Shown one piece after another: positions 23,594-58,569 of a stretch of DNA of 64,000 nt. The notes beneath the pieces were generated by a model that was given only the letters and a program-made list of their open reading frames with translations, ran no database searches and was not told the DNA's origin. The first letter of the stretch is position 1, and every line of letters begins with the position of its first letter. The position numbers and the translations under genes were made by a program. The stretch lies in assembly GCA_905178155.1 (NCBI GenBank), contig CAJINV010000001.1, forward strand, positions 14,443,379 through 14,507,378, given 5' to 3'. The DNA is from Amoebophrya sp. A120. Lineage: Eukaryota > Protista > Dinoflagellata.

Positions 23594-26500
23594 CTAGGCG
23601 AGTACAAAGCGGCGAAAGTGATTTCCGTCGACGTAGCCCACGAGGTACATGCCGTTCCGTTGCAGTGCATCCTGGAGCTCTTTCCATCCAGCGAAGCGCT
23701 GGTACACTTCACTTTTCCACGAGTTCAACTGTTGACGGATAGCTACCTGTTGTTCTCTGTTAAACTGCCTACGCAGGTCCTGCGCCAGCGCTATGCCGCG
23801 ACCGTTGGCGTAGCGCCACTTCGCCATGGCCTCGCGCACCAGGCTCTGTTCGACACACACAGTCCGCTTCCCTTGCAGAAGGCGGTGGTCTGCTGCAAAA
23901 ACAGACGCCAAGTCGGTGGCATCGTTGCCGTCCATGAGGAGCGCGATCCAGCGAGGCAGTTCCAGCTCTTCCCTGGACAGAGGAACGGCCGAGTCAGGCA
24001 TTTGGATGTAGCTCAGGTACTGCTTCAGCATCAGGGTGAACAGATCCTGGCTTGCGTCCGCCCCCAATGTTGGTGCGAACCGCTGGCGGTGAATCTGGAA
24101 TGTCGACATCTGGTCTCCCTTCCCGATCATTACGCGGAACCGCGCTTCGCACAGAACCAAGGCTGCCAACTTCCGCAGCAGTGAGCCTTGCCCGGTTGAT
24201 GCCAGGTTTTGTTCTACTTCGGGGAAGTGCCTTCCGAAAGCGAGCAGCAAAGCTTCCATGCCCTCCCACACCTGTTGAAACAACTCTGGCGGCTTTCCCG
24301 CTTCGTTATGATTTCTGTTGAGGACGAAGGCATTATACTGCTGCTCGAATTGTTCCAGCCAATCCTGCACTTGGTCCTCGTCTTCCTCCTTGGTCGTGAG
24401 AGGTGGAAACAGGTCCCAAAGTAAACTTGCAGCGTCTGGCAAGACGATTTTGTCAACAACCTCATCACTCGTCCAATCCTTTATTCCCACCGCCTTATCG
24501 AGCTTATCCCACGGTTGCCCGTTCGCCAGCGCCTTCGCGACGCTATCCCGTGCCGTCTTCATGTCCCGCGAGACCCGGTTGTGCAGCTCTCCGACGTCTT
24601 CAAATCCCTTCTGAAGGGCATGCAACTCTTCGGGCTGCAGATGTCCCGCTTGGACGGAGTCGTATTCGAGCAATGGGACGTGGATGTTGTGACCGTGGTC
24701 CTGGTCAAACTGATCGATGTTGTTCTGATAGCTGACATTGATCTGGAGGAGCATCCTTTCCACCCTTTCCGCGACTTCTAGCTGCATTTCACCATCTTCA
24801 TCATCCGCACCCCCGTGAAGATGTGCGGGATGATCAAGAACCTCGCGGAGTTTCTGACCAAGGTTCGCCTCATTTCCCAAGCACAGCTCGCGAATTTTGC
24901 TGGCGAAGTGCCTGCGCGGGTTGCCCGGGAGTTTCAACTTCCCCTCGTAGTTCCTGTCAGTGTTGGAGGACGCAAGCAGCGCATTCATGCCGCACGTATT
25001 GTTTTCAGAATCGGCGTCAAGCCAGTGCCAGCGAATCGCACGGCCGGTGCCGTCCAACGGATTACTGATGGCCTCGTCTTCAGTTTCGTTTCCGCACTCC
25101 CCCTCGGTCTTCAAATCGCTGCCCTCACGAGTGTTCAGGAACTGCTCGAAATCGGCTTTCAGTGCGACGAGCGCAGCGGTTTTATTTTCGTCGGCAGTAC
25201 TACTGTCGTTCGGCGAAACTGGCCCTGGTGAAGAAGGTCCAGACGGGCCGTGATGATCTGCGTCCGGGTCATCGTGGTATGCATTGCAAAAGTATCGCAC
25301 TACCTAGCAAGCTAGTATAAATCGCATTTTCTCTGGAATGTCAATTATTTTTTCATTTGTATAAATATATGCTGAATATTATATGACACTCACGAACAAG
25401 AAACCAGATTCGTCGTGCAAGTCTGGTATGTGTACGAGTATGGTACAACAACTTTTGCAATTCATATGTCGTGATCGTCAGCCATACTGCCTCCTTCCGA
25501 CAGCTGCGGGGGAGACTGAACAAGCTGCACTCGGAAGTGCAGATACGCCACTGGTGGTCCTTCCCGGTGTCGATCTTGCTCGTCCACACGACCGTCCTCG
25601 GGCAGCTCGGCTGGGGCTGCTTGCAGCATGGCCTGACTATATTCGTACCGGAACGGAATCCGCGAGATCTCGAAATCCGCGTCGCCCCCGTCCACGCGAT
25701 GGCTCTGGTGAAGGAAAACTAATTGCTGTCGGGAAGCGCCTTGCCATTGAGACTGCCAGTCTTTCAAGTATTCTGCGTAGTCGTTGTCCATTTGTTCGTT
25801 TTGCGCGATGTAGCCGTCAACGAAAGTCCCAGATGCCGCAGCAAACCACCTCTGCAACTCAGGCTCCGATTGCATCACCTCGGTTTCCTGGCCGTCCAGG
25901 ACCCGAACCCGATCCTCGCCTTCATTATCGGATGCGAGACTTGCTTTCTCTGGTCCAGTCCCGTCTTGTTGCAGTACGACCCGGTACTCCAGCTGTAGTT
26001 CCTGGTTGGCCTGCTCGTTCAAGAATCGAAACAACGGAGACCACACATCGCCTGGCGCAAGGCGCTCTCGGTGTGTCACCATATCATTCCAAAGTAATTG
26101 CTCCAAAATGGCATCCAGCTGTGCCCATGCGCTCGCGGTTTCGTATTCACCTTCAGTGGAATCCTGCGGCGCTGCCGCATTTCCCGGGCTATTGTCGTCA
26201 TAGTCCGCCACAGCAGGAGGCATCATACCCACATCTCCAGTATCGATTCCCGCGTGGGGGTGGGGCACAGACGACCCAGCACCACTACCAGCAGAATCAC
26301 TATGTCTATGCAGCTGCTCTCCGCCACTTTGGCCGTTGGAACGCTGCATCGACATCTGCTGGCCGTGCTCGATGGCCCCCCCAGTGCTCGTTGGATCTGC
26401 TTGCTCGCGGCCATCCTGATGCAGCTCAGAAAAAGCGCACGTTTCTCTACTTCCCGGCGGATCTTGTTCGCCTAAGTGCGCAATCTTTTCCTTGTGTTTC

Positions 26501-29500
26501 ATAGGCTGAGTATCAGCACTGATCGACAGCGCCTGCATATTAGTGTCCAAAGCCTCCAAAGACAAAGTCGCGTCGCGCTCGGCGCCTCCTTCTGCATCCG
26601 GATGAAGACCCGCTGCGAATTCATTGCCCTGGTCTCCGTGGTCAACATATAATCTGGCTGAACCATCAAAATGCTGCTCATCGTCGTTGCTATGTCGGCC
26701 TGAACCATCCGAATAAGCATCGCTGTCGGCAGCCTCAGCTTCAGCCTCAGCTTGAGCATCGTCGTTGCTATGTCGGCCTGAACCATCCGAATAAGCATCG
26801 CTGTCGGCTTCAGCTTCAGCTTCAGCTTTAGCATCGTCGTTGCTGTGTCGGCCTGAACCATTCGAATACTGCCCTGACTCCGCGTCGCTCTCATTGTCTG
26901 ATTCCACATCCGCAGTTGCAGAAGGCGGCAGTGGAGTACGAGTAGTGATCTTTTCTTCAATAATATCTGTTACAAAGGTATATTCCAAAACTCTGCTCGT
27001 GCTCATCGCTATTCCGCCCGCTTCTTGTCCAAGAACGGATACCAAGACGATACGAAGTTCGTCTAATGGTAATGTCGTCAAATTTTCTTTTAGGTTGCGA
27101 AGTTTACTGATGACATCATTCTGCTGGTCGTTGCGAAGCTGCGAGGCGATGGCGTGATATGACGCGGAAGTTGTGCTGTGATCATGTGACGGCGGGGCAC
27201 TCGGGTCGTCCACCACGTCCACCATGCCAGTCAGTGTGGCTTCCGACAGCCCAGCAAATTTCCCTTCATGGCGACGTATGCACTGCAAAAATATCGCATT
27301 AGTTTTGGAATCAGAATTTCTCTCTCTCTTTAATGCTGACCCTGACTGAGACTGAAATAGATACCTTTGCGACGATACTTAGTTATCACGACGCTGCTAT
27401 CGAAAGAAAAAGTGTTGACGTTACGGCTTTAAGTTTTTTGGAAAAAAAAAAATTTGGGTGTATGCTGGAGGTATGTTTTTGGTTTGTAAGTCGACCCATT
27501 CCCGCGATTAGTTCTCGCGGGACTGCGACGAAGCTCGCTTGGTTTGACCTAGCTAGTGCACAAAATATGACGGCGTAGGACTTCGCCTACCGGGGCCGCC
27601 CCCTGCCGTGCCTTCTCCCCGCCGCCGGCTCTTAGATCCGGGCCAGAACGCTCAAACCTCGAACCGTGGCTAAACCTCGGACATGTGGGCCTATGAGCTG
27701 GCATCTAGACGGCGTCTCCGCCAGTTCAGCTCTGTGCGGCTTTGCAAGTTTCCATCTCGGACCTTTCGGCGCCTTTTGTCAAATTTTCTCCATGATTGAA
27801 GAAAAGGTGGCACTTTCGAGGATGAGGGAAATGGGCAAATTTTGGGTACCAAAATGCCCAAAATTTGCCGGCACCCCAAAAACCGTCAACGCCTCATCTA
27901 GACACGACGGCATGGTCGATCGGGTCTTCCAGAAGCCTGCTTTTTTGCATGAAATCGACCAAAAAACCGTCAACGCCTCATCTAGCCAGCACGCTATGCT
28001 CGATTTGCCTGCTCAGAAGGTGCGCTCCCGTGCCCGCTCCGGTTTGAGTGAAGGGAAATGGACCATAGCGCGCTGTCTAGATGAGGCGTTGACGGTTTTT
28101 GTGGGATCTGCATTTTTTGGCCTCGAAATGGCGTCAAATCATTGATTTTTTCCTCGGATTTTTCCAATTCCCCAAAAAACCGTCAACATCATATAAAGAC
28201 AGCATGCTATGGCCCATTTTCCCTCACCAAAACAGGTCCATCTCCGGCGTCGATCGTTGCGACGCGTTGGTGGGCGGGTCTTGTCAGCAGTGCCGGGGCC
28301 CTGGCCCACCGGCTTACAGCCATCATGGCTCTTGAGCCCGGACAGGGATTGGGCAGCCATTTCAGGGCTTGAAGGGGCGCAATGTTGTGGCGGGGCCTCA
28401 TAGTTTTCGCACCTTGTGCACTAGCTTCCTCTCCCAGAGTTTTACCACTTTAGAGCCCCGCAGGGGCAAAGAGGGAGGCTGCGCGGCGGCGAGAAAAAAA
28501 AAAATTAAAATGATGGTGCTCAGTACCCACAAAAAATCTTTTTTCCAAAAAACTGCAAACCGTAACGTCAACACTTTTTCTTATGATAGCTGTATTTCCA
28601 GTGCCATTGCGTTTTTCGACAAAAATATATATAGTATTACACGATACTTTTTCACAAGATACCAAGGGTCGACAAGTACTCTCTCGGGAGTATGAAAAGG
28701 GTCCTCAGAAGTCGCAGTCGGTTTTCATCTTCACTTCTTGAGCGAGCATCTGCTGGCGTCGTCTGATTCTGGTCTTGTTCGTCGTGGCCCGCCTGTGTAT
28801 CTTCATGGTGGGCCACAGATGTACTTGCTAATGGTAGTTTCATCCGCCGATAGTACTGTTCCAATGTTACAGCGGCTAGGTCAATTCTTTCTGTGTGGTC
28901 GTTCGCTCCTTCAGCTTCTGTTCTACTTTGGAAGATGACCCGGCTCCAAGCAAATTTGCTCGGATAGTTGCAGAGCTTCCGTGCCCATGCGATCCGAACA
29001 GCAAATGCCCACCAGACTTCATTATCATCGCAAAGAGTGCCAATACGCTGATCCTGATGCATTCTATTGCTATTACTATTCAACCTCAAGTAGTAAGGTG
29101 CGACACCGTCTTGCCCCAGTGAGTCTCCAGATAGTCGCGAGGGTTGAAAACGTTGGAAGGCTGTCTTCAGCATCGTTTTCAGTTGGGCTAGCGGTCTACC
29201 ACCGCGGCCCGCATCATCCTCTGGCGCCAATAATCCGTCGAGAAAAGCCGACTTTAGATGTCGCAGCTTTGGTAGGTTCTTCGTAACGGCGTTGCGCTGT
29301 AGTGCAAACGCCAGATCCTTCATGTTCGCCTGACCTCGGAAGTATTCCTCCTGTAGCCTTGGCTGAAGATGCTCCTCGAACTCGTCCCAGAGTGTCTTCA
29401 CATCCGCTGACATCGTCACTTCTAAAACTTTTTCTTCAAACTCGTTGACGAAGTCGTTTTGGTACCTCGCGCGAAACGCCGTCATGCTTGCAGAATCGTT

Positions 29501-32500
29501 TGCCTGGATATTTAGCACGCCGCACCACAACTCCTCTGTAGCGAGACGACGCAGTTCTTCCATCGTCACTTCCAGAGCAGTATCATCCACGTGCCCGCCG
29601 CCCGTTCGCAAGGCTAACGGGTGCGCTCCACGGACCTTGGTGGCCCACGCGCTCTTGCTTGCGGCGGCTCGTGCATAGACATCGTGCGCCCGTTGGACGG
29701 GACTTGCAGCAACGCCTGCCTCAGCATCACAGCTTGCCGGTGTATCAGCCACAGCAAAAAAATTCGCTGCGTCCCCGTCTGCTATCGCGTCGGCATCGAT
29801 GATGTTCTCGAGAACAGCTTCTAAGACGACGCGCAACGGCTGCGGTAAAGCAGCGGACAAGTCGCTGCTTGCCGCAACATTCCAAGCCTCTTTCCACCTT
29901 TTCAAAGCGTCTCCAAATATCTCGGAAAACTGCTCGTCATGCGATAAGGCCGTCAATACTAGAGGGCTGTCATCCGGAAGGTCCTTCGCAATGACGTTGC
30001 TCCATAGCGAACGAGCCTCCGGGAATAACTGCACCGAGGCGGGAAGCTCTTGCACGGAGGTATCTTCTTCGAGAAGCACAAGCGGTTCATACGTCACTTT
30101 AAATTCGTACTCATGCATCTCGTCCTGTTCTGTATCTGTTTCTGTTAGCGTGGCGATGATATTCATGGTTTTCGTTCGAGGAGCATCGCGTGGTTGGGCT
30201 TCTCCTTGGTCGCCCTGCAACTCTTCTCCTGTCTGCGTGGCCTCCGGCTCCCGGCGCCGGTGCTCCTCCAGCTCTTGATCGAACGCCTGTTTCACTCGTG
30301 CCACTAGACCCTCATCGAGCTGGAGTTCCGCGAAGCCGTCCGACGGTGCCTCGACGTCAGCAGGGCCAGCTTCGTGGGATTCCTCCGCGTCCGGAAAGCG
30401 GTGGCCGTCGATTGCGCCCACGATGTCACCACCGACCGAGCTCGCGCCAGAGGAGATGTGATACACGTTGACGGGTAGAAGTTGCACAACCTGGTGCGCG
30501 CCGGCGCCTACACCGTTTCCATGGTGGTCTTGTAGTTCCTGCATCGCGATGTCGTCATTATCTCCAGCATCTGAGAACTCCACTGACGCCTCGACCTCGT
30601 CGGTTTGTTGTCCGGCGGGATAAGTGCGCCCAGAAGCGGAAGCTGCGTCGCTGCCAGCAGCGTCTGCTTCCTCGCGTTCGAGCTTCGCTTCCTCCGCTGC
30701 CAGTAGCTCGTCCGCCTTGCGCTGCTGCTCGAGCGCACGATTGTAATTGCTCTCCATTTGCTGGGCCCAGCCGGTCTTCCCATTTCGCGCGGTCTCAAAC
30801 ATGGCGATCAACTCTTCCAGCAGACAAAGCGAGAGCTCGGTTGGTATCTCTCTAAAGCTCTCGCGCACACTCTCCGTTGCCTCCCGTGCCGAGCGGCCCG
30901 TCGTCTGGAAGAGGAGTGCGTCCGCATGGTCGATAATTTTGTTCCCCCCGACCCCGTCGAGCGCGAAATACGGTTCGAAAAGATCTATCACCTCGTAGAA
31001 ACGATCGGCAGGCCGCACGTAACCAGGCTCGATGTCGCCAACAAGCCTCTCATGCACAACCCAATACGACGCTAGGTCGTGCAGCGCCAAAGTAATCTGC
31101 TGGGCGCGGCCAGAGCGCAACACGAGACGTGCCGTATCGCGAATGTACGTTCGCTCTTCGACGTCAAGAGACTCGCACCGACGAAAGACGTACTGCGATA
31201 CCGGCAGAAGTGCCGCCTCTTCGGCTGTGATTTTTTCTTTCTCTACGGCTGGCGTTCTCGAGATCGCACGGTTCCCCGCCGTGAAAGCAGGCACACCAAA
31301 ACCAATCTTTTTCTTTTGAGCAGGAGCACAACTGGACCTATCGACATCCCCGGGGTCGTCCGAACCCGCAGTGCTCACAGCTCTCATTTGTCTGTAGTCC
31401 GGATAATCGCACAGAACTGCCTCTGCATAGGGCATGTTGGCACGACTTGCTTCATCGGGGAAAGACTCTCCTGAACGCCGCCGCCGCGCAGTTTCTCTTT
31501 CATCTTCTCTACTGAGCGCATCCAAAATAATCGTAGCAAGGTGCTGGGCAACGTCGGGCTCACCTCGTACAACAGCACCGCCAGGCCCCTCGACCGCTCT
31601 GCGTCCTGTTGCTCCAGAATAATATTGCAGCTGGCGCAGTGCGTGTGCGTCGCCAGAGATTGCCGCGGCCTTGCCAAGATACTGCTGCCCTGACTCTTTT
31701 TCAAAAAAGTTGCTGGGGTACTGGTGGTAGTAGTGGCGAAGCTTTGCCTTCACCTGGGCGTCGCGATCCTCCGGCGCACCGTCGTCCTGGTCTGGAAGCT
31801 TCGGGTCTTCCTTCTTCCACTCCTCGTGCAAAACACTCCAAATCAAGCTAGAAAAGAAGGGTCTGGCTTTGTGCTCTTTCTTTATCAAAAACCACCGCGC
31901 CAGCGTAAACACTTGGCTTGCAGTCACCCGCTGACCGCCCTTCTTTGCGATCTCCTTCAAGAACTCGAGCAATCTTTTGGAGCGCAGCTGCAGTTTCCAG
32001 TTCGTCGTCGAATATTCAAGCAATGCCGTGTTCGCGTATTGCTTCCAATTGAGAACCGCAGCTGACGTCAAATGTGCGAAAGGCAGCCCGGAAGTTGCGT
32101 CTTGCAACATACTCGCTGAAGTAGACCCTGCCAGTGCAGAAGTAGGCTGCACAAGAACTGGACGCGGCGTAACGGCTGCTTCAGGCGGTGACGCGGAGGT
32201 GATAGCAGCGGCACGGCGCGGCGACAGAAACCCGCTGGGGCGGCTCTGCGTAGGAGGAGAGCCGTCAGCACCGCCTCCGTTCGTGCTTGGAGGTTCTTGC
32301 ATGTTCAGCTCGGCGCTGGTCTCGTCCAACCACTCGCGCAGCAGCTCTCGTTGCCGCTTCTGGACCTCCACGCTTATGGCACTTAGCGCACGCCGTTGCG
32401 CAAGTTGGACCTCGTCGACGCGTTGCTGATGCTCGTGCAGAAAGTGGCGCTTCAAGTAGCTTGAGATCGTAGTTACGTCGTGCGTCAGGTTGTCGAGGTC

Positions 32501-35500
32501 TGTGCCTTGGTCGACATGCTGCGGGGGCATCGTTGCTTGGAAGAAGTCCGCAACCAACTTGAGAGGGGTGGGCACGTCGTAAAAATCGAAGAGCAGGCGC
32601 TGCTGGAGCTCGGGGTACTCATCGCCCTTTGCCACCAGGGCCGTGGCGGCATCGGAAGCGGCCGCCGCCACGTCTCCTTGGTGAGTGGGGTGCGAACCAT
32701 AGGGCCCGGCCTCCTCGTTTCGCAGGATTAACAAATCCCGATCAGCCAGGTACAATGCGTAAAAAGTATGCTCCAACTGGTCAACTAACTCCGCATCCTT
32801 ATCCGCCTGCGATCGTGTAGTTTGCGGCGGTTCTACGCCCACTTGTTGCTGTTGCTCCGCTGGTGCTCTGTTTCTGTGCAAGTTCGCGTGCGCAACGAGC
32901 TCCTCCCAGAATCTGTGGCTGTCCCGCGTCCCGAAGACTCCTGCATCTGCATCGCGCAGAGAATGCAGTGCACGGGGTCGCTTCGCACGCCAGGTCTCTT
33001 CTGATATGTAGCCTGCTTGCCGAGCGTGGGCGAGAAGCTCGTTTTGTAAGTTCACCACCTCACGGAACGCTTTCTCCATTTTGCCACCCAGCCCGAAGAG
33101 CTCCTGCATGGTATGACTCCACACCCTGACTGCCGCACCCGCTGCCGCAGAATTACTGCTTGCCCCGCCTGCGGTTGCACCGACAACATCGTATCCCGAT
33201 TGTGACAGCTGCCCAGCCCTGCGGTGATAACTGCGCGCCTGCGAAGGTCCTGCCGCAGAGCTGCCAGAGGAGCTCGAAGGAGTTGTCGATGCTGCCATTA
33301 CTAACTCGACGCATGATTTTTTTTCCCAGTCGGTGGTCGATGACAATGTCCTCTTTTCCACGGCCAAGTGGATCAAGCAGGTGATCGCAGCTTTTCCTGC
33401 TTGCAACGCGTCAACCGTGAGGACGTTGCGCGCGTCGGAGTGCTGTAGACCATCGCCAAGCCTGGATCCGTGGTCGCTCCCGCGATTCGTAATCCCGTAC
33501 GGAAAAGCGTTTAGCCGGGCATCCAACATTTTCTTCAACACATCACCGGAAACTTTGCAAGGGTTGAAGCGCCCGGTCTCCAGGCCTTGCGCCAAATGCG
33601 CCCAGAGCCGAAGCGCAGGGAAAATCAAGGAGGGGCCATTCAACGCTGCGAAGAGCTGCATCCGCCAGTTCTTGGCGTTGCTGGCGAACGAACCAAACAA
33701 CGTGCGAAACACCTTCAGGGGCGCTACTTCGTCACCAGTAGAATCGCGGCCGCGCGTGCCTCTACTTTTGCTCGCCTCGAGACGTGTGCGGATCACCTGC
33801 TCGATCTCGCCGCTTTGCGCCAATCGGATGTTTTCCCCCTCCGCATCGTTAGCCCAGGCGTCAAAAACTTCGCTTTCCACTTGTAGCTTGCTGTGCAGCC
33901 AGCGGTGCAACATGCTGGGAGGCCCTTGGAACTGCAGGATATCGTCTGCCGCGGCTTGAAACGACGCTAACGAGTCCGCGCACGCGTCCGGGCAATCCGG
34001 AATCACGGGGCGCACAACCTGACGCAACGCCTCGCGCTCCCAGAACCGGCGGTGCTTGGGCGCAGAAAAGTCATTGAAGTACGGCAGATAGTCGGCTACC
34101 GCGCTCTTGCGCACCTCGGGAACGTTGGTTGCGAGATCTGGATCTCCGTAGACAGAGGCAATCTTGTCGTCTCTCGGGTTGTCGTTCCACGTCGGGCCGA
34201 TGGCTTCTTTCGCGACATTGTCCCTCTGCACCACCCGACGTACATCAACAGGCGTTCCAAGTTTATCTGCCGCGTTTTGGAAGACTGCAGCGATCTCAAA
34301 AGATGTCAGGTCCACTCCGTCCATGCTCCGTAGCCGTTCCCGCAAGAATCGCACGTCCGAAATCAGGTCCTCGGTGGCAGCAGATAGCCAAGAAAGAGCC
34401 GCGCCGTCGCTGCTTGAGCTGGCGCCACCAGCTGGTGCTGGTGCACCTGCTGCATTTGCGGAAGCAGTATGAACTGCAAAAGTTGTATCGTGCCAGTAGT
34501 AGTAGTTGTAATTGAAATACAATAAATTAGCTCAGCGTGGCAAATGGAATTTGTCATGCTGTTTTGCGTTGGGAACGGGATGGAGGTTGGTAATGCATGA
34601 CTGCGATTTGCACCACGAGTACGATACTTTTCTTGCACAGGATAGCCAGTGGCTGATGTACTTCTTCTCGGTCCATACACGACGTCTGTCAGTACGCGAC
34701 TGGCGTGCACTGCGGCCAGCAGCAGCTGGCGCTCCGTCGAGCCCACGTCGCGCCGGGGGCCCCACCAGTTATCCAGGAAAAAACACCCATCCCCATCCAT
34801 TTTTTCATCATCGATCAATCGGCGGTAGTGCTCTTTGCCGACCGGGTAACCCAACGCCTGGCATGCATATTGACGAGCCCCGTTGTGGGACTATCGAGCC
34901 CATCCACTTTTTGCATGACAAGCACTGGAGCTGGACTTTTTGCATGTTTTGCATGACAAACTGGATGGGGCTGGGTCTTTTTTGTGGATACCAGTACAAA
35001 CGAGAATACGTCTGATCGGGCCCGGGTATGACGCTTTCTGGCCGAGTGCGGTCTTCCTCGGGCGTCACGTTCTCTTTCTCGGCAGACTCGCGTGCGTCTT
35101 GTGGTAAGTTTCGGCGCGCTCGTGGCGAGTGACGTTTCCACATCTCGTTAACCTTATCGAACTCTCCGTCATTGTCCGCCAACACGTCTCCTGTGCGGCC
35201 TTCCTCCTTCAATGCGTCCAGGTCCGCGATCTTCGTTCCTTCTCCGCCCTCCGCTTGTGCGAAGTCGAATTTACGACCGTAGACAAATACGTTGTTGTTG
35301 GTGCCAATCATTTTGTAGTTGTCTGGTGGCAGACCAGTTTCCCCGTGGCCTCCGCCGATCCGCTTGCCGCACACTCCACACGCCCCCTGGTCCCTGCCCA
35401 GCCCGCCACAGGCGGACACGCGCTGAATTCGTCTGCAGAAAATGTGGCGAAACATCGACGTAGTCCGTCTTGAGGTGTCGGCTTCTAGCTTGCTGGTGTA

Positions 35501-47500: not shown

Positions 47501-50500
47501 CGACTGGTCCCGCGTAGGCAACAGGTACGGGTGTGCCCGCTCCTCCCACCCGCGGCGGCTGCGGCCAGCTGCGGGAAGGGCGCCTGCTGCTGCGCCGCCG
47601 CCCTCAAACTCTTCCACAATTACGCGACTAGGAGTGGCGAAGTCGATTGCGGCCAGTCGGGCCCTCTCCATCGTAAAGCGCTTGAAGCGATGCGCCTGCC
47701 GAATGTGTCCGCCTTCATTGCTTGGGTCCGTCCAGGAAATCATATACGGGTCCACCGCTTTTCGCAGATCCCTATCAAGTCGCGCGATGAGCTGCACGAA
47801 AGACACCAACACCATCCAGGACGGGTTGTCCTGCTCACTCAGGGCAATGATTCTCCGAAGCGCGTCTACATCCCGCAAGTGTAGGTCATTCCCCGCGATA
47901 CCGATAGCATCACGTCGTCCCTTTCGCGGTTTCCACCAATCCGGAAGTTTCGTCGCGGACTTGTCATACCAAAATTCTTTGAACGCCTCCTCTCCAGGAT
48001 CTTCATTGTTCCTGCCACGGTCGGGGAGACGCGCCGCAAACCAGGCCGCTTGGCGCCAAACCTTGTTTGTGTCTGCCTGCCGGTCTTGTGCGGTTTGATT
48101 CTCATCGGGATCAGGGGGCGTTTCGCCGCGGATGGCTGCCAGCTGTATGTCCAGCATCATGATCATCTTGACATCGGTATTAGACTTCTTCATGGCCTCG
48201 AAATTTTCCACCACAGCCCACGGCGATGGCACATCAAAAACGTGAAGGTGTCTCGCGAACGACAAGCGGTTGTGCATCACCCAACGATTGCTGGACTCGA
48301 CGTAGAGCCGATCTCTGTCACCGAAACGCCAGACACGGTCGCGAGCATCGGTCCAACGACGCAGAACTACGAGCTTGAAAAGCAGCTCATTGAGAAGCGT
48401 GTGCGAGAAGGGAATGCCCGCGCCAATATCCAAATGCAAGGACACGTAGAAGTTTTGATTTTCCAGTTCCGGGCGTGGTTCGTTTCGTCCCACCTTCTTC
48501 TTGTCGGCTTTGCCGCTGCCCCCCGCAAGAACTACATGATCTGCGATTTCGTCCAGAACGCGGGCGCAGAGACTGTCTTCCGTAGGGGGAGAGTAGATTG
48601 GGATGTTGATTCGCAGCTGTTTCGCATGCACCCGGTCCTTGTCTTCGCGCTGGAGCATTGCGACCATCCACGATTTGCCACCTCCGGGCTCCTCGCTAAA
48701 CACAGCTCGAGCGGCCTGGTCCCCCTCTTGTCGCGCGGGCTCGAAAACTTGCCGATCGAGGTAGAGGGGGTGGTCGCGCGTGGCGTCGTCCGGAAGCAAA
48801 TCGGCCGCATTCTCGACGATGCGATCCTCAAAGTGTGCCAGGAGGTTGCTTGTTTTTCGTCCATTGGGATGCGAGTGGATTACAAGAAGCGTTTCGGAAA
48901 AGTTGCTCTCGCTTGCTCGATGTAGTTCTGTGGCATGATCGGAGGTCGCTGCAAGAACATGACTAGTTTTAGCGTCTGCATTCGCCTCCATAGCTTCATC
49001 GTCAACACCCGCAGTAAACGTTTCCTCGATGTGCTGTTCCATGCGACCTTCGCTGCTCGTCGTGCTCGTGCCGGCTTTGAGGTAGAGCACATGGCGCAAG
49101 TTCAAATACAGTTTCGTTGTGGCAACGGCGACTTCGTAAGACAGGCGCTCAACATTCAGCAAAAAGAACAGCGCGGTTCGATCGTGCTTGTTCTTTGAGT
49201 GCGCAGCAGCTGCGGACGTCATGAAGACCCTGCGCAGAAAAAGCTCCAGCTCCGCAGCCGTCGTGCTTGGCGAGCAGAAGAACACGTTGGCGGATCCCAA
49301 CTGCTGGAGACGAGCCTGTCGTGCGAGAGAAGTGACGAACTCGAGCGGTTCGGCGGCGAGTATGACCCTCGCCCAGAACCGGTGCGCTCTAGTACGGTGG
49401 TCCTGGCTCAGGCCGCTGCCCACACTGTCTGAATTCGAGTTCGACTCGCCAGCATCCGCACGCATGAGCAGGGCGGCGGCGTCAAATTCCTCTACATCAC
49501 GAACTTCGTCGAACTCATACCCATCTGGAAGGGGAAGGAGATCTGATCCCCCAGCAGGGGCAGCTCCATCGGCGCGGTCTACATCCAAATGATTCAACAA
49601 AGCACGCAGAACAGCCGGAAGCTTTTGGACGGACAGGCCCCCACTTTCCACGTCAATGCTATTTTTGGATCCGTCAAAGTCAACGAGCCGAGTGTGTACA
49701 GCACGCGGTGCGGCGTCAGACTGCGTGCCGATGCGCTGATCCCGGTGTTCGTCAGCATGAGGGCGGCTGGAGTTCCGACTTGTTGCCGACGGCGGCGCTG
49801 CAGATGTCGTGATAGATAACTTTTTCTCCTCGGTCCAACGGCGCAATATTCCTTTTGCGAGGGACCCGAACACCTCCTCCACGTGTTCCGTCGTGTACGG
49901 TGCCTCACCGTTGTCAAACGAGACAGTGGTGGACCCATCGGAACATTGCTGTGCTGAGCCCGTGACCGCATCACGAACAGCTGCTCCAGGTGTTGAGTAG
50001 AGAGGTGCATGATCTAGATCTACTTCGGCATCCGCCATGTGAACGTCGCCACCGTGCTCGTCCTGCTCCTGACCAGCAACCATAATATCGTGCTGAAAGT
50101 CCTCCTCTTCTTCATCCTCGGCAGAATCATCCTCGTGAAGATCTGCTACTTATGAAATGCAAAAGCATCGCACTTCTAGTAGAAATCGCATTTACAAACT
50201 GGCTCGGAAATTGGAAATGCGGAGATCTGCCTTGATTGCCAGATCTGTACTGTATGGCCACGATTACTACGAGTGCGATAGTACTTTTGCAGTGCATATT
50301 ATTCTTGCTCCTCGTCGTGCGGAACGACAGGAGCCGAAGTCTTGGGTCTGCAGGGAGTATTCCGGTGCGTTTATCAGGTCAAGAACGGTTTCTTGGTCGT
50401 GCCGGAAGGATTCGAACTGCGCAGCACTAACATCCGCAGCGAGCGGGTGCACGTTGCCTCTTCTGTCCAGAAAACGGCTAAGAGCGTCCTCCTCACTCTC

Positions 50501-53500
50501 GAGCAGCCAGGCCACACGACGCCGCATGAGCGGATTTGCCCGCATGGCCGGAATCAGTCGAGCCAGATCGAGTAGCTGCAGGGTCGTAAACCGGCTGAGT
50601 ACTTCCGGAAATTCCCGGCGCGCTGTCTTGAACTCGCTTTCCCACACTTGCTCCACCTGGTTTCGTATCCAAGAAAAAAACTGTGCTAGTGTAAGTCTTT
50701 TGGGAAAACTGCATCACAAGTTTGTCTGCCATGACAGGAAAAGCTTGTTATGCGCAGATAGGAAGGAAAACACCTAGGAAGGGAGCCGATCAGGCATGTT
50801 GAGAATGACAAATGTAACTGTTTTGCATTTTCTGCATCACAGATTTACACTTACACAGTTTTTTTTTTGCATATTTCGCAGCCCGCGTTTAATGGTCCGC
50901 AGAAGCGGCAGCAGCGTCTCGTGAGATCTGGCACTGAAAAAGATGCTAGAGCGGGTATCCAAGGGTTCGTCTGGGAGAGCACCTCCCTCATGTTCAGCCT
51001 GTTGGAGCCGCGCCCGCGCATCCTCCATATCTTTGTAAGTCTGTAGACTAAATTCATCCTGAGCTGCAGGCGGGTCGTGGTTCCCGACTTCCAGCTGCCG
51101 AAAGTGCAGCTGGACTTTGTACGACCTCCAGTGCCCCCCGCTGTTGTTCCTCGCAGCCTCTCCGCGTGCAGCACCTCCCGCATGAATTGCGTTCTTGCCC
51201 GCACTGCGAACGCCAGACTTCTCTCTGGGGCCAGGCGGAGATGGGTCTGGTCCTACCTCAACTACTACGTCGTAAAACAGAGGGATTTGAAAGTCGTTCC
51301 GCAGCCGCCGCAGCTGTTCCCCCAGCGCGCGCAGCTCCTCAAACATGGTATTGAAGGCACGCAGCTGGCTCTGCTTGTCATTCGTGCTTGCGACAAACTG
51401 CACCTTTTCCCACAAGCTGCGCAACTCGGCAGGCGAAAACCTCTTTGCCGGTTGGGCAGGCCTATTTTCCGCCCCCTTCGAAGTTCCTGCTTTTCCGCTT
51501 GTTGCTCCTTTCACGGTGGTTGGACCGTCCCCGTCTTCCGCTGCTTGAAGACGCGGGAGAAAAGCCGATGGAAGGTAACATGCGTCCTCATCACTTTTAT
51601 TCTCCAAGTTGTCTGCGTGCAGCATTTTCGTAGTGGGCAAGACCGAAGACGGTGCGCTGCTGGACGCCGACGCGTTCGCTAGAGCTGATGAAGACCTCGC
51701 TTGTAGCGATGCAGCAGCCCCCGCCGGTCCGTTCTTCTGCACCGTGGGCCGCGGCGCACAGGTAAGCGTAAACACACCATGCGAGAGGAGACTTACAACC
51801 ATGTCCGAGGTTTTGACCTCTGAGGTGGTCGTCTTGTTATCAACCAAATTACGGAACCACACCTCGTTTTGCAAGCCCTCCTCGATCTTTTGCACCAGGC
51901 GTACGTCCTTTGATTCAAAAGGGAGCTCGTTAAACAGCTGCGCGACGAAAACCGGCTTACGTTTGTTCTCACGCAGAAAATTGACCAGTGGCGTTAACTC
52001 CACGAAAAGCGTTTTGAAGGTGTCGATTTTTTGCACGGCAAAGGAGCTCTCCTCGCCTTCCAGCGCCACCTCGACCATTTTCTGAACTTCGCTTTCGCTG
52101 AGTTTTTCGTTCGCATCTTTCAGTAACCACTCAATCAACCCGGAGCTGCTGATCACCTTCTCGTAAACCTGCAGCAGCGACAGTGACGCTCGCACTCTTC
52201 GCAGCAATTTGGCCAGGAGTTCCCAGCAGGCGGGCTTGTTCCCGTCGTCACTGATTTCCGTCGCTACGCTTGCGCTTGGGCTTCCTGTGCCTGTGAAGAC
52301 TCTTCTCGTCCTCCTCATGATCTCCATATTCCTTTTGCTTTGCTCAAACAGGTCGTTGCTGGCTGGTCGGGTGTCGTCGTAGCCATACTCATCTTCTCTC
52401 GTCAGGTCGTCTGGAATGTCCATAGAGTCGCCGTTTCGCTCGACCAGAGAGTATGTCGTCCACGGGTAAACGAAACGGTAGTGGTCTGCGATAGTGAGGC
52501 GGCTCTCAAACGCCAGTAGTAAATTACTGTCTTCAACAAGCTCCCTGGGTTCTTCACCTGCTTCTTGGTCGACTTGCATAGCGTCTGCATCTCCACCTGT
52601 TTCTCCTGCGGGCGAGGATTCGGGAAGCTGGCCTGCCCGTGGACGAGCGACGAGTGGCAGACTGGGCTGAAGATCGCAGCCGGCCGCTTTTTTGATGCTT
52701 CCTTTAGTACGTGCAACAAAATTTTCAATTTGTGGCAGGAGCTTTTCGCGAGCCTCTTCCAGGTTTTGCTGCACCAGCGCAAGTTCATCGAGGAACTGCA
52801 CAAGCGGGGAATCCTGCAGCAAACTTTCCAATGCGGCGGTCGTAAGTGTCGACTCGGCGCGCTGCTCTTCTGCCATCCTTTGCCAGTCCAAAGCAGCCAC
52901 GCGACCAGTTGCATTGTTCAATTGCTGCTCTCCTGCTCTACTTCGGTCGAAATTTGCGTCTTTTGTCCTAAAGTAAACAAAGAGCGCTAAGTGCTTGCGG
53001 ACGAGTTTCCGGGTGCCTGCATCGGGTGCTGCACCACTGGTTGGCGTCGTGCTACCGGTCGAGCCAGAAGGTCCCTGAGAGGTGGCAAGTGCCGACGAGG
53101 CCAACAGATTGATGTGAGCGACCGGGAAAGATCCGTCCACCAGCCGGTGAAAGAAGTTCGCTATGATCTGCCGATCGCCACGGACGGCTTCCTCGAGCTC
53201 CTGCAACTTCTGGCCGTTCTTCACCAGGGCATAAAAGCTCGCTAGGGACTCCAACGCAATAGCGAGAACATCTTCCTCGAGCACGGGGTGCGCGATTTGG
53301 CTTCCTCGAAGAGCAGGAGAATTTTGCCCACCGAGACCCAGCTCGCGGATTTTTGCAGCAAGGGAGCGCCGCTCGAGAATGCTGTGCCGCAGCGGATTCC
53401 AGTGTGTTACAAAAGCCTGCTGCAATTCGCGGCGGCGTTCCGGTTCTATGTTGCCAGGCTCCGGGCGATCAATATCCAGGGCTTGCAAAACCGATACAAA

Positions 53501-56500
53501 TTTGATTTGCTCACTTTCTTCCGGGATTTCCGGAAATCCCAAAAGCTTGTCCCGCAAGCCGTTGGCTGCGGCCATGGCGCGGGCCTCTTCTAGGGCATTC
53601 CTTTTCTTGATGGCACTTCCTGCGTCCCGTCCATCAGCGCCTCCGTCGGGTCGTGTCCAATACGAAAAGTCTGGGGCGTACAAAGTGCCTCTGAGTAATT
53701 GATCCGCTGCGGCCGACCGCCTCTTCCACACATTGTTGGCGAAATTTTCCTCTTTACGACCTGCACAGACTCTCTTGATGGGGGCAAACGAAGGTCGCCC
53801 GACCTCCTCCCAATAGCTATTCACGGAAGCTACAAAGCCCAGCAGTACCTGCAGTTTGTGTTCAGGCGTCTCGAGCACGGGTGTGCGTTGTACGTCCAGC
53901 ACCTGCACCCAATCTTTCTCAACAGTCCGCTCCGGCAGGTCATGGGAAGACGGTCCAAAATTGTCGAGTTCCTCCGAAAAGACAGCGCTGCCCAAAAAGT
54001 CGCAAACCTTCTTGAGCTCAACCCCAGCCCAGTTTTGCCTGCGCTCTCGTGGTTTCATTAGTAGAGGCTGCACACCATTCGTCTCGTCGCGTTGTTCAGC
54101 ATCCGCTCCATCTCCATTCAACTCCCCCTGGCGGCCCTGGTCCGAAGCTAGAGTACCGGCCGATGTGGTGTAAAATTGCGAGAGGTACAGCAATCGGTGC
54201 TGTGCGGCGATGAAAGAGGCTGCAGCGGTTTGCTGCCCCGCAGCCGGAGGCACCCAAACACCGAGGAACCGGCCCAACAGGCGTTCCCATGCGGCGCGGA
54301 ACAGGATGGAGAATAAGCGGGCTTCCTCGTCAACAACCTCGTAACCGTACAGGGCCCCGGCCTCCGCCAGATAGGACATAGCGTCCTGCAGAAGGTTCTC
54401 CAAGTGCGAATAGGTCGTAGAGGCGCCATTGACGGAACTGCTTGTCCTTTCAGCTAAAACATTTTCCGCCGCCGGGGGAACAAGTGCGTCCTGAATCATG
54501 GCCACGGCGCAAGTAGTGCGGTCGCCGAGCAGCAGTTGCCCCGCGTACAGATCATGAAAGGCACCAGCAAGGAAGAACTCTAAAATGCTGTGACTCAGCC
54601 GGCTCTCAGCCAGTTCTTGGAACGGGTGACGTCGCCCCGCAGACAAGATCGGGCCCCTCTCAGCGCGGCGCCGGCGCAAAAGCTGTAACTTGCGGACGAC
54701 TCCGGCGAGTATGTCCTCAACAAAACGCTCGCGCTCCGGTCCCGCGCTCATCAATGCGAGCCGAGTCGTCAAGTGCTGCAAAAATACCGACATGGCGGCA
54801 GCGCTGCGCTGCACCGGAAACCTACGATCCGCTTCGGTCTCGACTTTCTCGTCTGTGTCCATGTGATCTTCTTCATCCGCGCCGCGGGGCACGGGCAACA
54901 GTTCGGCTAGCGTCTCTGAGTCAATGTACGTCACAAACAGGCCCAAGGCCCACGCGTTTGTCACAACCGGCCCCGGCTGCTCTTGTTCTTGAGGGTCCCA
55001 TCTATTTCCTTGGTGCCGTTGGGAAACCTGCTCGGACTGATCTTCCTGCAGCTCGCCACTTCCAGAGGACAGCTGCGCGATTTGCCTCTTTGCTTCCCGT
55101 AGCAAGAACTTGCGCGCGTTTTGGTGAGACTGGACACTTGCGTCTTTCGTGCGCAGTAAGCCACACACACTCTGATCAATCTTGCAGAGCAGGTCGAACT
55201 CATTGTGCTGGTCGGAGCGGAGATAGGGAACGGCCGGGTCGAGCAGGACGTTGCCCTGCCCACCTCCCCAGCCTGAAATGACCACCCCGGACCGGTTTCT
55301 CCAAAACATTCTACGGCTATCAGGTATTGGACCCATGATTCTTTCCATAACCCCCATGTCGCTCGAATCACCTTCAATTTCGACCGGACCGCGCTGCCCA
55401 GCATTGTAGAGCGTGTGGTGCCCTTTCTCTCCCGTACCTCGTTCGCTCCACAGGCGCTGGGTGCAGAACTGCACGAAGAGTTCATGATCATCATGCCCAA
55501 CGAGATTCAACACAGAAAAACCTGAGTCCGAGATCGAGCGCTCCAAGGCCGGCCCTAAATATCTGTTTGCAAGTTTCGTACGCTGAAAGTGTCCTCCCTC
55601 CTTAATCTGAAACAACACTTCGTTGTCCGGCTTTTGTCGATGAAGGCGGTCGTGATTTCCAAAGACTGGCTATGAAAAAGAAAAGCGTCGTCCCCTCGCC
55701 GACAGTACCTCTTACAACCGAAGCAAATAAGTACTAAACGCTTCGTCCCATGATGCGAAATTCACCCATCAGACATCACTTTACTACGTCGTGCTCGTGT
55801 TGCGATTGCATCAACGAGCAACTACACAAATTTGTGAGGCAGAAGATTCGCGTTGCAAATATCTAGGAGAACACGAATGGCGGGGCGTTTCATGCGAAAG
55901 CTGCTGCTAGGTACGCCCGAAAGACGTCACTGCAATGGCATCATAGTGCTGCCTTCCTTGCAAAACAAAATTTCCCCGTTGGAAATTTTGCAACAAGGAA
56001 GTCATGTCATCTCGTCTTATTTTTACTCTTCTGGACATGGTTCCTCGCTTTTCTGTTTGATACGCCCATCGAATCGGGCAGAAAAGTGGAGCCGAAGGAG
56101 TCGAACGGGTGCAGAAAAGTCTCCAATATCTGATAGAGCACAAGGGCCCGCAGGTATCCAAAGTTACTTCGCTGTCGCGCGTCGTTGTCCTCTTCGATTT
56201 TGTACCCGCGCGGGCGGGGCTTGCTGTCAATCGCAGCCCTGTCGAAATACATTTCGTGCCCCCCCGCCATATCAGTCGGAAACCGGAGGAGGCAATCCTC
56301 TTTGTCCACGAGGAGGTCGCGCAGCTGGACGGCAAATTTTCTGCCACTGTGATTCCAAATCATACTGACTGCTTTTGCCTCCGAATCCGTGTTATCATCC
56401 ACGTCCCCGAAACTATTTCTTGCGAACACGCACTCGTTACTTCGGTCTGCGACCAACGCATGCGCCGCACCGATGGTTGAAGACAGGTCTTCGTAGTACT

Positions 56501-58569
56501 GCTCCGATGGCGTTATGAGACCATGACGGCCATCGACGTCACGATTGCCCTCAGCAAGGGCAAGTGGTCCTGCAGCTGTGCCGCCAGTTCTTCGACTAAC
56601 TAGAGTATCGTGCACGGGCGGAACAAACAACTTCGCGAGACGCAGCTGCCAGCCTCCTTCTAGATCCGGCTGCATCAATCCTGCATCCACATAGGAGTCT
56701 TTACCCGCTGTTCCTGCCTTCAACTTCCCCCATGCATCGACTGTAAATGAGCGACGACCATGTAGCAAACGCTCATGGACACTCACCTGAAGTTGATTTA
56801 CAATGACAATGTTGAATGTACTAAAACTAATGAGGAACGTGAATGTATGTAAGTATGAAGATCAACAGGAGCCGCATTGATATGATCGTATAATAAACAG
56901 TTCCTAATTATGCTAATATAACTACCGGGTTCTGGCTCTTCAAATCGTCAGCGGGATCTACCAGCCATTCGTAAGTGTATGTAACGTCGGGCTGGAGACC
57001 GGATATAGGAACTCGCAGCAGGAGCGCAATATCCTTGACGCCGCTTCCGTCATCAAATCCGTTCGCGTTGCGGACCGCGACGTTGTGATAGTCTCGGAGC
57101 CTCAGTGTGTACGCCTGACACAAGTCGTCCGGCATTTCTGCGGAGCCCTGATCTGAGTTGCCAGCTCCAAGCACTCTTTGGACAGCACTTCGGCCGAGGT
57201 TCTTCAAGCCAGCGACCCACCCCTCATCCATTGGGGGCCGCGGGTGGTCTTTGACGCAAACGCGCAGACGCACGCGGCCAGGACTTGGCTTCCCGGCGGG
57301 GCCAACTTCATCCAGCTGGTGGCGCTGCGAACTTGCGAACCACCCGTCAAAACCCGCTCGATTGAGCGGCCAAACCGGATCGTACATAAGAATGCCAGTC
57401 AGGGTCACCGAGTGCCTTCCCGGCCGCCCGGCACCCCCGATGGTCAGCGGACCTTCGGTATCGGGCAGGGCGGTGCTCGCGGAGGACGCATGCCGTTCAG
57501 CATCACCTTCGCGTGGGAAACGCTGGTCGTCGGGTTGCGTTTGCTTCGTTAGCGAACCCTTTACTTTGTTTGTTTTGCCTGCCGCGTTGTCCGACGGCTT
57601 CATTTTGTTGCTGATCCCGGGTGCCGGCTGCTGGGGGAGAGGATTCTGGGACGAAGAGGATGCAGATTTGGAGTAGCCCGGAGGATGATGTCGTCCTGGC
57701 ATGTTCCCTGCCTTGTCTGCTGGTCGGGTACTACGGCTATGCGCAACTTGTGGGGGCTGCGTCTGCGCCGGCAAAGGCCCTTCTTTGACATTCTGGAACG
57801 TTGCCCCCGAACCCGAGCCTCGATCTTGCCCACTGGTAGACACAGCATCCCTGGTGTCGGCGGCGCCCCTCGCGGGCGGATCGAATTTCTGAGTGCTGTA
57901 ACGTGTTCTAGTTGGCTCTACCACAGGGACTGCTTCCCCAGCACTGAATGCTAATTCAGCAGGGTGGCTGCTCCCCAAATAATTGCCCGAAAAATCTTGC
58001 TTGCCGGAACCTGGGAGCCCCAGGGACTCGTTTCCCGGAATGGAAGTATAGAATTTCTTGTTTCCCGACCCCGAGAGTGAACTTGCAGAAGGTGGTGGAG
58101 GTGGAGGTACCGAGACCGGTACCCGTCCTGGAGGAAATCCTGCATTCGGAATGCCAGGCGGCACTGTACTACCCGACGCGAAAGGCGCGAACTTCATCGC
58201 AGGTGGCTTAGCAAACACGCCTACTGCTGGCCGAAAAGCAGGCCCGCTCCCACTGGTGGTGCCGCCGGGAGTGGATGGAGCAGCAACGGACCCCGGCAGC
58301 AGCCCCCGTGCGCCAGACCTTGGGTTTCCGGTCACTCCGCGCCCACCTTCATTGCTACCGGCCGCTCCGGACCCACGACCACCATTAGCGCGCGACCCGG
58401 TCGTTTTCAACGCGTTAGCTCCTGTGGATAAGCCCAAACTACATCCGGCGATAATCACCACCAAGCCAGCGCGCAGCATGGCCGAGGGACCCTTTCCTTT
58501 CGTGCTCCGAATCATCGTCGCAGCTTGTCCAGCTTCCTTGGTACTAGGGATAGCAGAATTAGGATACAT
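23594..58569 (-). CDS. Giant RNF213/mysterin-like AAA+ ATPase with RZ-finger E3 module; 12 exons, ~10,376 aa
   Basis: One GT-AG intron (56787-56925) and ten introners (55671-56062, 50666-50873, 50151-50298, 38477-38976, 37864-38033, 35964-36226, 34770-34990, 34468-34644, 27277-28661, 25278-25466). The 3,845 nt removed leave a 31,131-nt CDS with an open frame across all junctions. RNF213 signatures occur in order: FCSPSTTAAELELFLRR, ERLSYEV, PGGGKS, LHLDI, DPDPAFVL...MRFSAGLPVFISGETGIGKT, VKVHGG, FFDEANT, ACNPYR, LVYRV, VSLRDVER, IPVFIVGKPGSSKSL, QCSPHST, VVVLDEVGLAE..PLKALHPLLE, SNWNLDPAKMNR, GLRDFYS, RNFGG, FGSSFP, YDALNQYY, LLNRMEK and QITTFS. The start could be Met at 58569, 58515 or 58479. 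Confidence 0.82.
25278..25466. mobile_element. Introner family C (189 bp)
   Basis: Ends TATGCATTGCAAAAGT / ACTTTTGCAATTCATA. An offset direct repeat TCGTG, 197 nt apart, restores the frame (DDH|DDPDAD). Confidence 0.8.
26680..26880 (-). repeat. Coding tandem repeat, 3 units of 75-78 bp (SDAYSDGSGRHSNDDAxAEAEAE)
   Basis: Near-identical units start at ~26681, 26759 and 26834 within an exon of the giant gene. Confidence 0.9.
27277..28661. mobile_element. Family-C-like introner (1,385 bp) with a nested inverted-repeat element (~27396-28590)
   Basis: Outer ends TATGCACTGCAAAAATATCG / CGATACTTTTTCACAAGATA. Removing 1,390 nt restores the frame. Inner ~65-bp inverted repeat GCTATC..AAGAAAAAGTGTTGACGTTACGG..AGTTTTTTGGAAAAAA. 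Internal AAAACCGTCAACGCCTCATCTAG motif repeated in both orientations. Confidence 0.8.
34468..34644. mobile_element. Introner family C (177 bp)
   Basis: Ends TATGAACTGCAAAAGTTGTATCGTG / TACGATACTTTTCTTGCACAGGATA. Eroded TSD AGCAG/GCCAG. Removing 182 nt restores the frame. Confidence 0.82.
34770..34990. mobile_element. Introner family B (221 bp)
   Basis: Left end TATCCAGGAAAAAACACCCATCCCCATCCA is identical to the TIR of the 7901-8012 element. Perfect TSD CCAGT. Removal gives RLYW|WGPRR. Confidence 0.92.
35343..35455 (-). other. RZ (RNF213-ZNFX1) finger-like motif
   Basis: FRHIFCRRIQRVSACGGLGRDQGACGVCGKRIGGGHG fits the C-terminal part of the RZ consensus (xCG-x7/8-CxxC-x3-IGGxxH). It lies downstream of the AAA core, as in RNF213. 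Confidence 0.72.
35964..36226. mobile_element. Introner (263 bp)
   Basis: TIR TATGCATTGCAAATA / TATCCAATGCAAATA. Perfect TSD TGTTC. Removal gives SQLN|TLWDI. Confidence 0.88.
37864..38033. mobile_element. Diverged family-B introner (170 bp)
   Basis: Ends CATCCAGAAAAAAACACTTAGCCCCAT / ATGGGGATGCGTATTTTTTTGTTGATA. Perfect TSD CTCGA. Removal gives TELR|AKDGH. Confidence 0.87.
38477..38976. mobile_element. Diverged family-B introner (500 bp)
   Basis: Degenerate family-B ends. TSD TCACC/TCACG. Removal gives TFHV|TRMES. Confidence 0.8.
42550..49300 (-). other. Dynein-like multi-AAA core of the RNF213-like protein
   Basis: AAA2-type P-loop PGGGKS at ~48671-48690. AAA3 Walker A GETGIGKT at ~46652-46675 and Walker B FFDE at ~46430-46445. 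AAA4 Walker A GKPGSSKS at ~44177-44200 and Walker B VLDE at ~43800-43815. Confidence 0.9.
50151..50298. mobile_element. Introner family C (148 bp)
   Basis: Ends TATGAAATGCAAAAGCATCGCAC / GTGCGATAGTACTTTTGCAGTGCATA. Eroded TSD CTACT/TTATT. Removing 153 nt removes a stop and keeps the frame. Confidence 0.83.
50666..50873. mobile_element. Introner (208 bp)
   Basis: 33-bp TIR TATCCAAGAAAAAAACTGTGCTAGTGTAAGTCT / TATGCAAAAAAAAAACTGTGTAAGTGTAAATCT. Perfect TSD TTTCG. Removal gives GLRN|QVEQV. Confidence 0.92.
55671..56062. mobile_element. Old introner (392 bp)
   Basis: TIR TATGAAAAAGAAAAGCG / TATCAAACAGAAAAGCG. TSD eroded (CTGGC/CGCCC). Removing 397 nt restores the frame. Confidence 0.72.

Follow-up and report, generated by a model that had tools for sequence, protein, structure and literature searches.

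A probable single gene of 12 exons for a giant RNF213-family protein in Amoebophrya sp. A120

RNF213 has been studied as an animal immune ligase and as a Moyamoya disease gene. We analyzed a stretch of 64,000 nucleotides (nt) from the genome of Amoebophrya sp. A120 (assembly GCA_905178155.1, contig CAJINV010000001.1, positions 14,443,379 to 14,507,378), referred to below as the window, and found in it a very large gene with an RNF213-like core. In our judgment, the minus strand from 58569 to 23594 very probably constitutes one expressed gene of 12 exons, and its product would be an RNF213-family protein of about 10,367 residues. A preliminary description, made from the letters alone, had suggested a protein about double the size of human RNF213 in a probable intracellular parasite. 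Both points hold: human RNF213 has ~5,200 amino acids (aa), and Amoebophrya sp. A120 is such a parasite. For the core, the assignment to the RNF213 family is sound on the basis of sequence comparison. We propose that the gene gives one transcript and belongs to a fast-evolving branch of the family; its product may work as an ATP-driven machine of the RNF213 type.

The open reading frames listed for the window form a chain of long stop-free stretches on the minus strand, from 58737 to 23597. With 11 introns removed, the 12 joined exons give 31,104 nt, a sole stop at the end, and 10,367 aa, as against 331 and 394 stops when the joined exons are read in the remaining two frames. The same 12 fragments and 11 introns, ten of them non-canonical, had been assembled into one frame in the preliminary description, with end points at 23594 and 58569 and a size of ~10,400 aa, and our analysis reproduced all of this. 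Junctions were taken from RNA-derived contigs, from a public protein model mapped on the window, from the direct- and inverted-repeat signature of the introns, and from colinearity with a paralogous locus. All database searches were performed per exon, and the joined protein was used only for the stop count, length, hydropathy, and motif positions.

The paralogous locus lies at C2:13.12-13.156 Mb in the A120 genome and is colinear with the full set of 12 pieces, with identities of 29-71% (37-56% in long alignments). At the places of introns 2, 3, 5, 8, 9, and 10, this copy lacks the introns of our gene and runs through in one frame; it also has introns of its own. Since the paralog is continuous in frame at these six places, the introns there are copy-specific insertions, and the exons that flank them belong together.

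All exons lie on the minus strand. Exon 1 (56926..58569, aa 1-548) runs from the first ATG of the open frame to a GT-AG donor after 56926. In the paralog, the counterpart of exon 2 (56077..56786, aa 549-784) is in one frame with that of exon 3 (50874..55667, aa 785-2382), with 57 nt between them; exon 3 is 51% identical to the paralog loci. The short exon 4 (50306..50660, aa 2383-2501), flanked by two introner introns, is contiguous in frame with exon 3 in the paralog. Exon 5 (38977..50143, aa 2502-6223) measures 11,167 nt and holds the RNF213 linker and AAA ring; its end at 38977 comes from a joint in an RNA contig. Exons 6 (38034..38471, aa 6224-6369) and 7 (36227..37858, aa 6370-6913) are followed by exon 8 (34990..35958, aa 6914-7236), which carries an RZ-like motif. 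Exons 8, 9 (34651..34763, 113 nt, aa 7237-7274), and 10 (28661..34468, aa 7275-9210) form one continuous frame in the paralog, and exon 10 contains the bulk of an orphan C-terminal extension. The gene ends with exon 11 (25474..27270, aa 9211-9809) and exon 12 (23594..25270, aa 9810-10367, including the stop codon). Exon 12 is 42% identical to the last 564 aa of the annotated paralog protein P0002, and the C-terminus of our gene product is one residue away from that of P0002.

The start codon is the least certain point of the model. The ATG at 58569 is the first in frame, and the first ~230 aa are not conserved in the paralog; the start is uncertain because paralog similarity in exon 1 is limited to aa 284-606 of the first open piece.

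Transcription and splicing are supported by RNA-derived contigs from run X1, which we mapped over 33401-39400 (6 kb). All eight contigs that fall on exons, which stem from this strain, match at ≥99% identity, and depth is zero in all five intron-bearing bins. DNA runs of this strain contain the whole stretch, so X1 behaves as RNA. One contig links 38471 to 38977 and confirms intron 5 (38472..38976, 505 nt, TA..GA, with the 4-nt direct repeat GTGA), at a place that is intron-free in the paralog. A 17-nt contig overhang corresponds exactly to 35942-35958 and confirms intron 7 (36226..35959, 268 nt, direct repeat GAACA, inverted repeats), and one of 12 nt corresponds exactly to 34651-34662 and confirms intron 9 (34650..34469, 182 nt, direct repeat ACTG). 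The X1 contigs showed no further loose ends, such as a spliced leader, in the mapped 6 kb. The raw RNA runs X6-X8 contained zero reads on the stretch, and as a test this sample has no weight. Junction-spanning RNA, which the preliminary description had named as a check for all 11 introns, is in hand for introns 5, 7, and 9.

Only intron 1 (56787..56925, 139 nt) is of the GT-AG kind, and its ends match the limits of paralog similarity. The ten non-canonical introns belong to the Amoebophrya introner type. They have direct repeats of 3-6 nt at their borders, terminal inverted repeats of the TATCC..TGCAAA type, and a guanine-plus-cytosine content below that of the exons; they measure 162-505 nt apart from the composite intron 10. 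According to the A120 genome paper, two thirds of the introns in this genome are non-canonical introners with inverted and direct repeats and a mean length of ~240 nt (PMC7789003). Like the introners described there (Farhat et al. 2021), those of our gene do not have GT-AG borders, carry direct repeats and terminal inverted repeats, and are excised from RNA. We found no essential difference, intron 10 being composite with a nested second element. Their removal is based on RNA for three, on an annotated model for one, and on frame and paralog for six. On the minus strand, besides the three introns seen in RNA, we identified intron 3 (50873..50661, 213 nt, direct repeat CGAAA, 33-nt inverted repeat), intron 4 (50305..50144, 162 nt, direct repeat AGCA, inverted repeat TATGCACTGCAAAAG), intron 6 (38033..37859, 175 nt, direct repeat TCGAG), intron 8 (34989..34764, 226 nt, direct repeat ACTGGT, 31-nt inverted repeat), and intron 11 (25473..25271, 203 nt, direct repeat ACGAT). 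Intron 10 (27271..28660, 1,390 nt) contains a nested element of ~1.2 kb, which is bounded by 67-nt terminal inverted repeats at 27396-27462 and at 28524-28590 and has three 46-nt repeats inside; its junction (28661/27270) is supplied by the public model P0121.

Demonstrable homology to RNF213 covers the linker and the six-AAA ring with its inserts, about aa 2,190-5,565, roughly the middle third of the protein. Inside exon 5, the homologous stretch spans 40952..49294 on the minus strand (aa 286-3066 of the exon 5 open piece). Searched against the PDB with phmmer, exon 5 matched the RNF213 chains 6TAX, 7OIK, and 8S24 (E 2.1e-89), with ~30% identity over the core. A grouping with midasin or dynein, which the preliminary description had named as the outcome to watch for, was not seen: RNF213 chains were the sole matches in the PDB at E ≤ 1, with no dynein or midasin chain among them. 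A profile of 24 animal RNF213 proteins matches exon 5 colinearly at positions 1795-3327 of 5,081, the AAA ring corresponding to positions 2132-3327. A homology search with the core returned 1,272 RNF213-family members. The linker N-terminal to the ring is present (hmmsearch, profile positions 1795-2259, E 1.5e-7 to 5.8e-5; hhalign, P 1e-7 and 8e-10), and the first weak linker similarity begins in the last ~200 aa of exon 3 (hhalign, P 7e-4 against P0003 and 0.028 against metazoan RNF213; hmmsearch, E 0.01-0.02). Pfam searches on all pieces, at strict and loose thresholds, gave only sub-threshold AAA matches.

Walker A and Walker B are intact in both modules that are catalytically active in RNF213, as the preliminary description had stated. 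In the AAA3-equivalent module, Walker A GETGIGKT (46652..46675) aligns to GETGCGKT of RNF213 and Walker B FFDEAN (46424-46441) to FFDEAN. In the AAA4-equivalent module, Walker A GKPGSSKS (44177..44200) and Walker B VLDEVG (43796-43813) are identical in RNF213; all four motifs are on the minus strand. The corresponding active-module residues of human RNF213 are K2426/E2488 and K2775/E2845 (PMC11549300). The ring is enlarged by inserts, including one of ~390 aa between the two active modules.

The protein thus shares with animal RNF213 (mysterin; 6TAX, 7OIK, and 8S24) a linker followed by a dynein-like six-AAA ring, with Walker A/B in the same two modules, and a Cys/His motif ~2,000 aa past the ring and colinear with the RZ finger. 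It differs from animal RNF213 in its doubled length and in the inserts of several hundred residues within the ring. Unlike animal RNF213, it has no RING, the RZ model finds no match and the first Zn-ligand pair is rearranged, and a ~3,240-aa orphan tail follows the RZ-like motif. The CBM20/N-arm, the E3 shell or core, and the C-terminal domain of animal RNF213 were not detected here at the sequence or profile level. Of the RNF213 motif order proposed in the preliminary description, then, the linker, the AAA ring, and a variant Cys/His motif stand, and the extension of that order to the whole protein does not.

The variant RZ-like motif, H-x2-C-x8-C-x9-C-x2-C-x7-H, lies in exon 8 (35345..35446, minus strand, aa 7085-7118), in agreement with the place first given for it, 35343-35455. 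As a reference for the RZ finger we used Pfam PF20173, C-x3-H-x6-C-x8-C-x2-C-x8-H, with four Cys and two His. By hhalign, RZ fingers align with the latter half of our motif, which comprises the nucleophile Cys, the CxxC, and IGG..H (P 5e-5), and against the whole metazoan RNF213 alignment this half is matched at the colinear place (P 1e-3).

Several observations weigh against the picture of one intact gene for an RNF213-type machine. In a genome-wide scan, PF20173 had no match on the gene even at E ≤ 10. The first ligand pair of the motif is reordered relative to C-x3-H-x6-C, and the residue matching human H4509 is not in place; this Zn-binding His is essential in human RNF213, and its mutation abolishes activity (PMC11549300). 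We found no RING family in Pfam and no RING pattern anywhere in the protein. The E3 module (shell and core) and the C-terminal domain gave no sequence or profile similarity. When profiles of the gene and its paralog were compared by hhalign with animal RNF213, P0005, and P0003, the RZ-like motif was the only match past aa ~3066 of exon 5. AlphaFold2 models of exon 8 and of the start of exon 10, from 2-row alignments, had predicted local distance difference test (pLDDT) scores of 35 and 36 and are unusable. With respect to gene structure, direct RNA support, from the 6 kb that was mapped, does not extend to 8 of the 11 junctions, the N-terminus is without conservation in the paralog, and the public annotation opens a separate model at 33846 and closes it at 26502.

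The ligase part of this evidence feeds the alternative that survives best. There would still be one gene, but the branch would have lost its ligase activity, so that the protein acts only as an AAA+ ATPase, as a motor or scaffold, and the Cys/His motif is a structural relic. We consider the chance of this to be a little short of even. The absence of a RING from the gene fits such a loss, and so does a very long branch stem in the AAA tree (2.2 changes per site). PF20173 fails here but reaches 59-80 bits elsewhere in the A120 genome, at three loci (C5:1.837 Mb, C8:1.111 Mb, and C1:7.11 Mb), and the His displaced by the rearrangement of the first pair is the one required in the human enzyme. Yet the four Cys and two His of the motif, all within 34 residues, are invariant relative to a paralog in which the surrounding sequence shows no more than ~46% identity. 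Moreover, the motif contains the only exonic CxxC of the 10,367-aa protein, in which Cys makes up 0.6%, and it is placed colinearly with the RZ finger. Because of the PF20173 mismatch and the displaced essential His, we leave ligase activity, which in the RNF213 family means E2-dependent transthiolation and ubiquitylation of lipid A or other substrates, as a hypothesis, and the earlier label of RZ ubiquitin ligase is likewise a hypothesis: neither the RZ model nor a RING finds a match, and the E3 module is undetectable by sequence. It is conceivable, although we are inclined to doubt it, that the variant motif takes ubiquitin from an E2 on C7097, the equivalent of RNF213 C4516, without a RING. 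A role in immunity or host manipulation is speculation.

The structural part of the evidence bears on a second alternative, in which two or three neighboring genes make up the locus: one that is RNF213-like and lies upstream, one of ~1,900 aa from ~33846, and a third at 26.5-23.6 kb. They would be expressed from a polycistronic precursor by spliced-leader trans-splicing, which is known for mRNAs of dinoflagellates including Amoebophrya (PMC7789003). The public model P0121 (1,905 aa) starts at 33846 and stops at 26502 as this would require, and among the homologous proteins no A120 model of 2,090-6,650 aa, the size range of the search, carries the AAA core of our gene. Both ends of P0121 are questionable, however. 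Its first 10 residues derive from another frame at 33846, and RNA contigs pass this position without a loose end. At the other end, P0121 excises 26868..26679 (190 nt) as an intron, which shifts the frame and leads to the stop at 26502. This piece of exon 11 (minus strand) is exactly an in-frame tandem repeat of 2.5 copies of 75 nt, coding for 25-aa units in which Ala, Glu, Asp, and Ser are abundant. Left unspliced, the main frame is open there and colinear with the paralog. The frame is in fact open across both break points, and P0002 (5,073 aa), with which it is colinear, spans them in one protein that runs from the AAA ring to the C-terminus. We therefore regard separate genes as unlikely. 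The end of P0121 is an artefactual frameshift, and a single gene is split in the public annotation, in which P0121 is a 1,905-aa fragment of this locus. That standard gene finders would split the gene had been foreseen. Introner insertions, together with a coding tandem repeat, have here clearly broken the public model of a 31-kb coding sequence.

Repeat-bounded false junctions of this kind may distort other gene models of the A120 genome. P0121 also omits 36 nt in frame in exon 10 (31709-31744). This omission may be an artefact of annotation or a genuine micro-intron, in which case the protein would have 10,355 aa.

The lineage-specific parts of the single-gene product are ~2,200 aa on the N-terminal side of the core and ~4,800 aa on the C-terminal side, ~3,240 aa of the latter lying past the RZ-like motif. 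A CBM20-bearing N-arm was not found: Pfam was blank on exons 1-3 even at E ≤ 5, and there was no profile similarity before about aa 2,190. PDB sequence searches were blank for exons 3, 8, 10, 11, and 12, the exon 5 tail, and an exon 7 profile, and the 3,240-aa extension had no match in Pfam, the PDB, or the ESM Atlas. We searched the first 1,200 aa of exon 10 against 1.84 billion representatives and obtained two proteins, P0121 from the locus itself and the paralog (C2/C13 copies). The rest of the tail was compared with the paralog models and with P0003 and P0005. Exon 10 is ~40% identical over ~2,000 aa to the paralog models P0001 and P0002. We rejected an origin of the extension by internal duplication of another part of the gene, as it is non-repetitive and shows no internal similarity. 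The low-confidence AlphaFold2 model of the exon 10 start (pLDDT in the 35-36 range) is all-helical; the N-terminal and post-RZ parts are probably largely helical and lineage-specific.

Near the N-terminus, we noted a signal-peptide-like hydrophobic segment, MLRAGLVVIIAGCSLGLSTGANA (58408..58479, minus strand, aa 31-54), which starts at the third in-frame ATG. It is one of just two hydrophobic 19-residue windows in the model, the other being a strand of the AAA core, and it is not conserved in the paralog. We think it quite improbable that this segment is real and that the RING-less giant is exported into the dinoflagellate host, to modify host or non-protein targets there by means of its ATPase ring and its Cys/His motif. 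If it were so, the protein would mirror the host-side RNF213 coat from the side of the parasite, and targeting would fall to the orphan 3,240-aa tail.

A census of the A120 genome, together with a phylogeny, both proposed in the preliminary description, placed our gene in a local family. We found at least seven RNF213-like loci including this gene, the sister loci being C2:13.13 Mb (P0002), C13:0.02 Mb (P0001), C8:1.705 Mb (P0005), C8:1.10 Mb, C5:1.84 Mb, and C28:0.165 Mb. The AAA core is common to all. The C2 and C13 copies are colinear with our gene over the whole architecture, exon 1 through to the stop, and both the variant Cys/His motif and the extension are present in them. Outside these two copies, no counterpart of the extension was detected. 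Canonical RZ fingers set the C5 and C8:1.10 Mb copies apart. We built a quick tree of the AAA core, without a root. In it, our gene and the C2 copy share the very long stem mentioned above; their sisters are two Amoebophrya-type sequences, C8:1.705 Mb (P0005) and a EukProt protein, and the animal sequences stand apart. Long branches also lead to three further A120 copies. In the public records, the proteins of the family bear the title "unnamed protein product."

That our gene is a decaying pseudogene copy, with its open frame as a remnant, is barely credible. The family is not free of decay: the C13 copy has an in-frame stop in its last-exon region, and the ratio of nonsynonymous to synonymous substitution rates (dN/dS) between C2 and C13 is about 0.86, a value from very few differences that is uninformative for our gene. 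Our gene, however, has zero stops in 10,367 codons despite an amino-acid identity of only 29-56% to the nearest paralog along its length, its Walker motifs are intact, and RNA contigs show it transcribed and spliced.

In the literature we searched, none of the papers that bring together RNF213 and dinoflagellates or protists reports a homologue from a protist, and the A120 genome paper does not mention ubiquitin (PMC7789003). For the RZ finger of ZNFX1, tracing has reached no further than choanoflagellates (bioRxiv 10.1101/2025.10.14.682297). The locus described here and its at least six sister loci show that an alveolate parasite possesses the RNF213 family, and in diversified form. Canonical RZ fingers are present in some A120 copies, and in the branch of our gene the RING is lost and the RZ rearranged, which makes the genome a natural test of the indispensable parts of RNF213.

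Further observations concern the sister loci. The canonical RZ fingers (PF20173) are at C5:1837036-1837191, C8:1110664-1110801, and C1:7111565-7111699. Those on C5 and C8 belong to RNF213-like giants whose open frames span about 6,900 and 6,000 aa, and the one on C1, in a 3,136-aa open frame, may be ZNFX1-like. The sister copies C2:13119867-13155831 and C13:1393-37643 lie at a contig end and a contig start, respectively, in opposite orientation. Their proteins are 91% identical in overall alignment and nearly identical over most of their length; the pair may have arisen by recent duplication, represent haplotypes, or result from a duplication in the assembly. Within otherwise unbroken paralog matches, isolated in-frame TAA or TAG codons (C2:13122643-13126257, C2:13135339-13135902, and C13:23346-24077) may mark tiny introns or something else. 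At C8:1700001-1710000 there is an uninterrupted open frame of 8,401 aa, compared with 6,052 aa in the public model P0005, and other giants of the family may be similarly truncated in annotation.

Downstream of our gene, on the same strand, the window contains a single-exon gene (20975-22171, minus strand, starting at 22171) for an NADH:flavin oxidoreductase of the Old-Yellow-Enzyme type (PF00724, E 2e-58).

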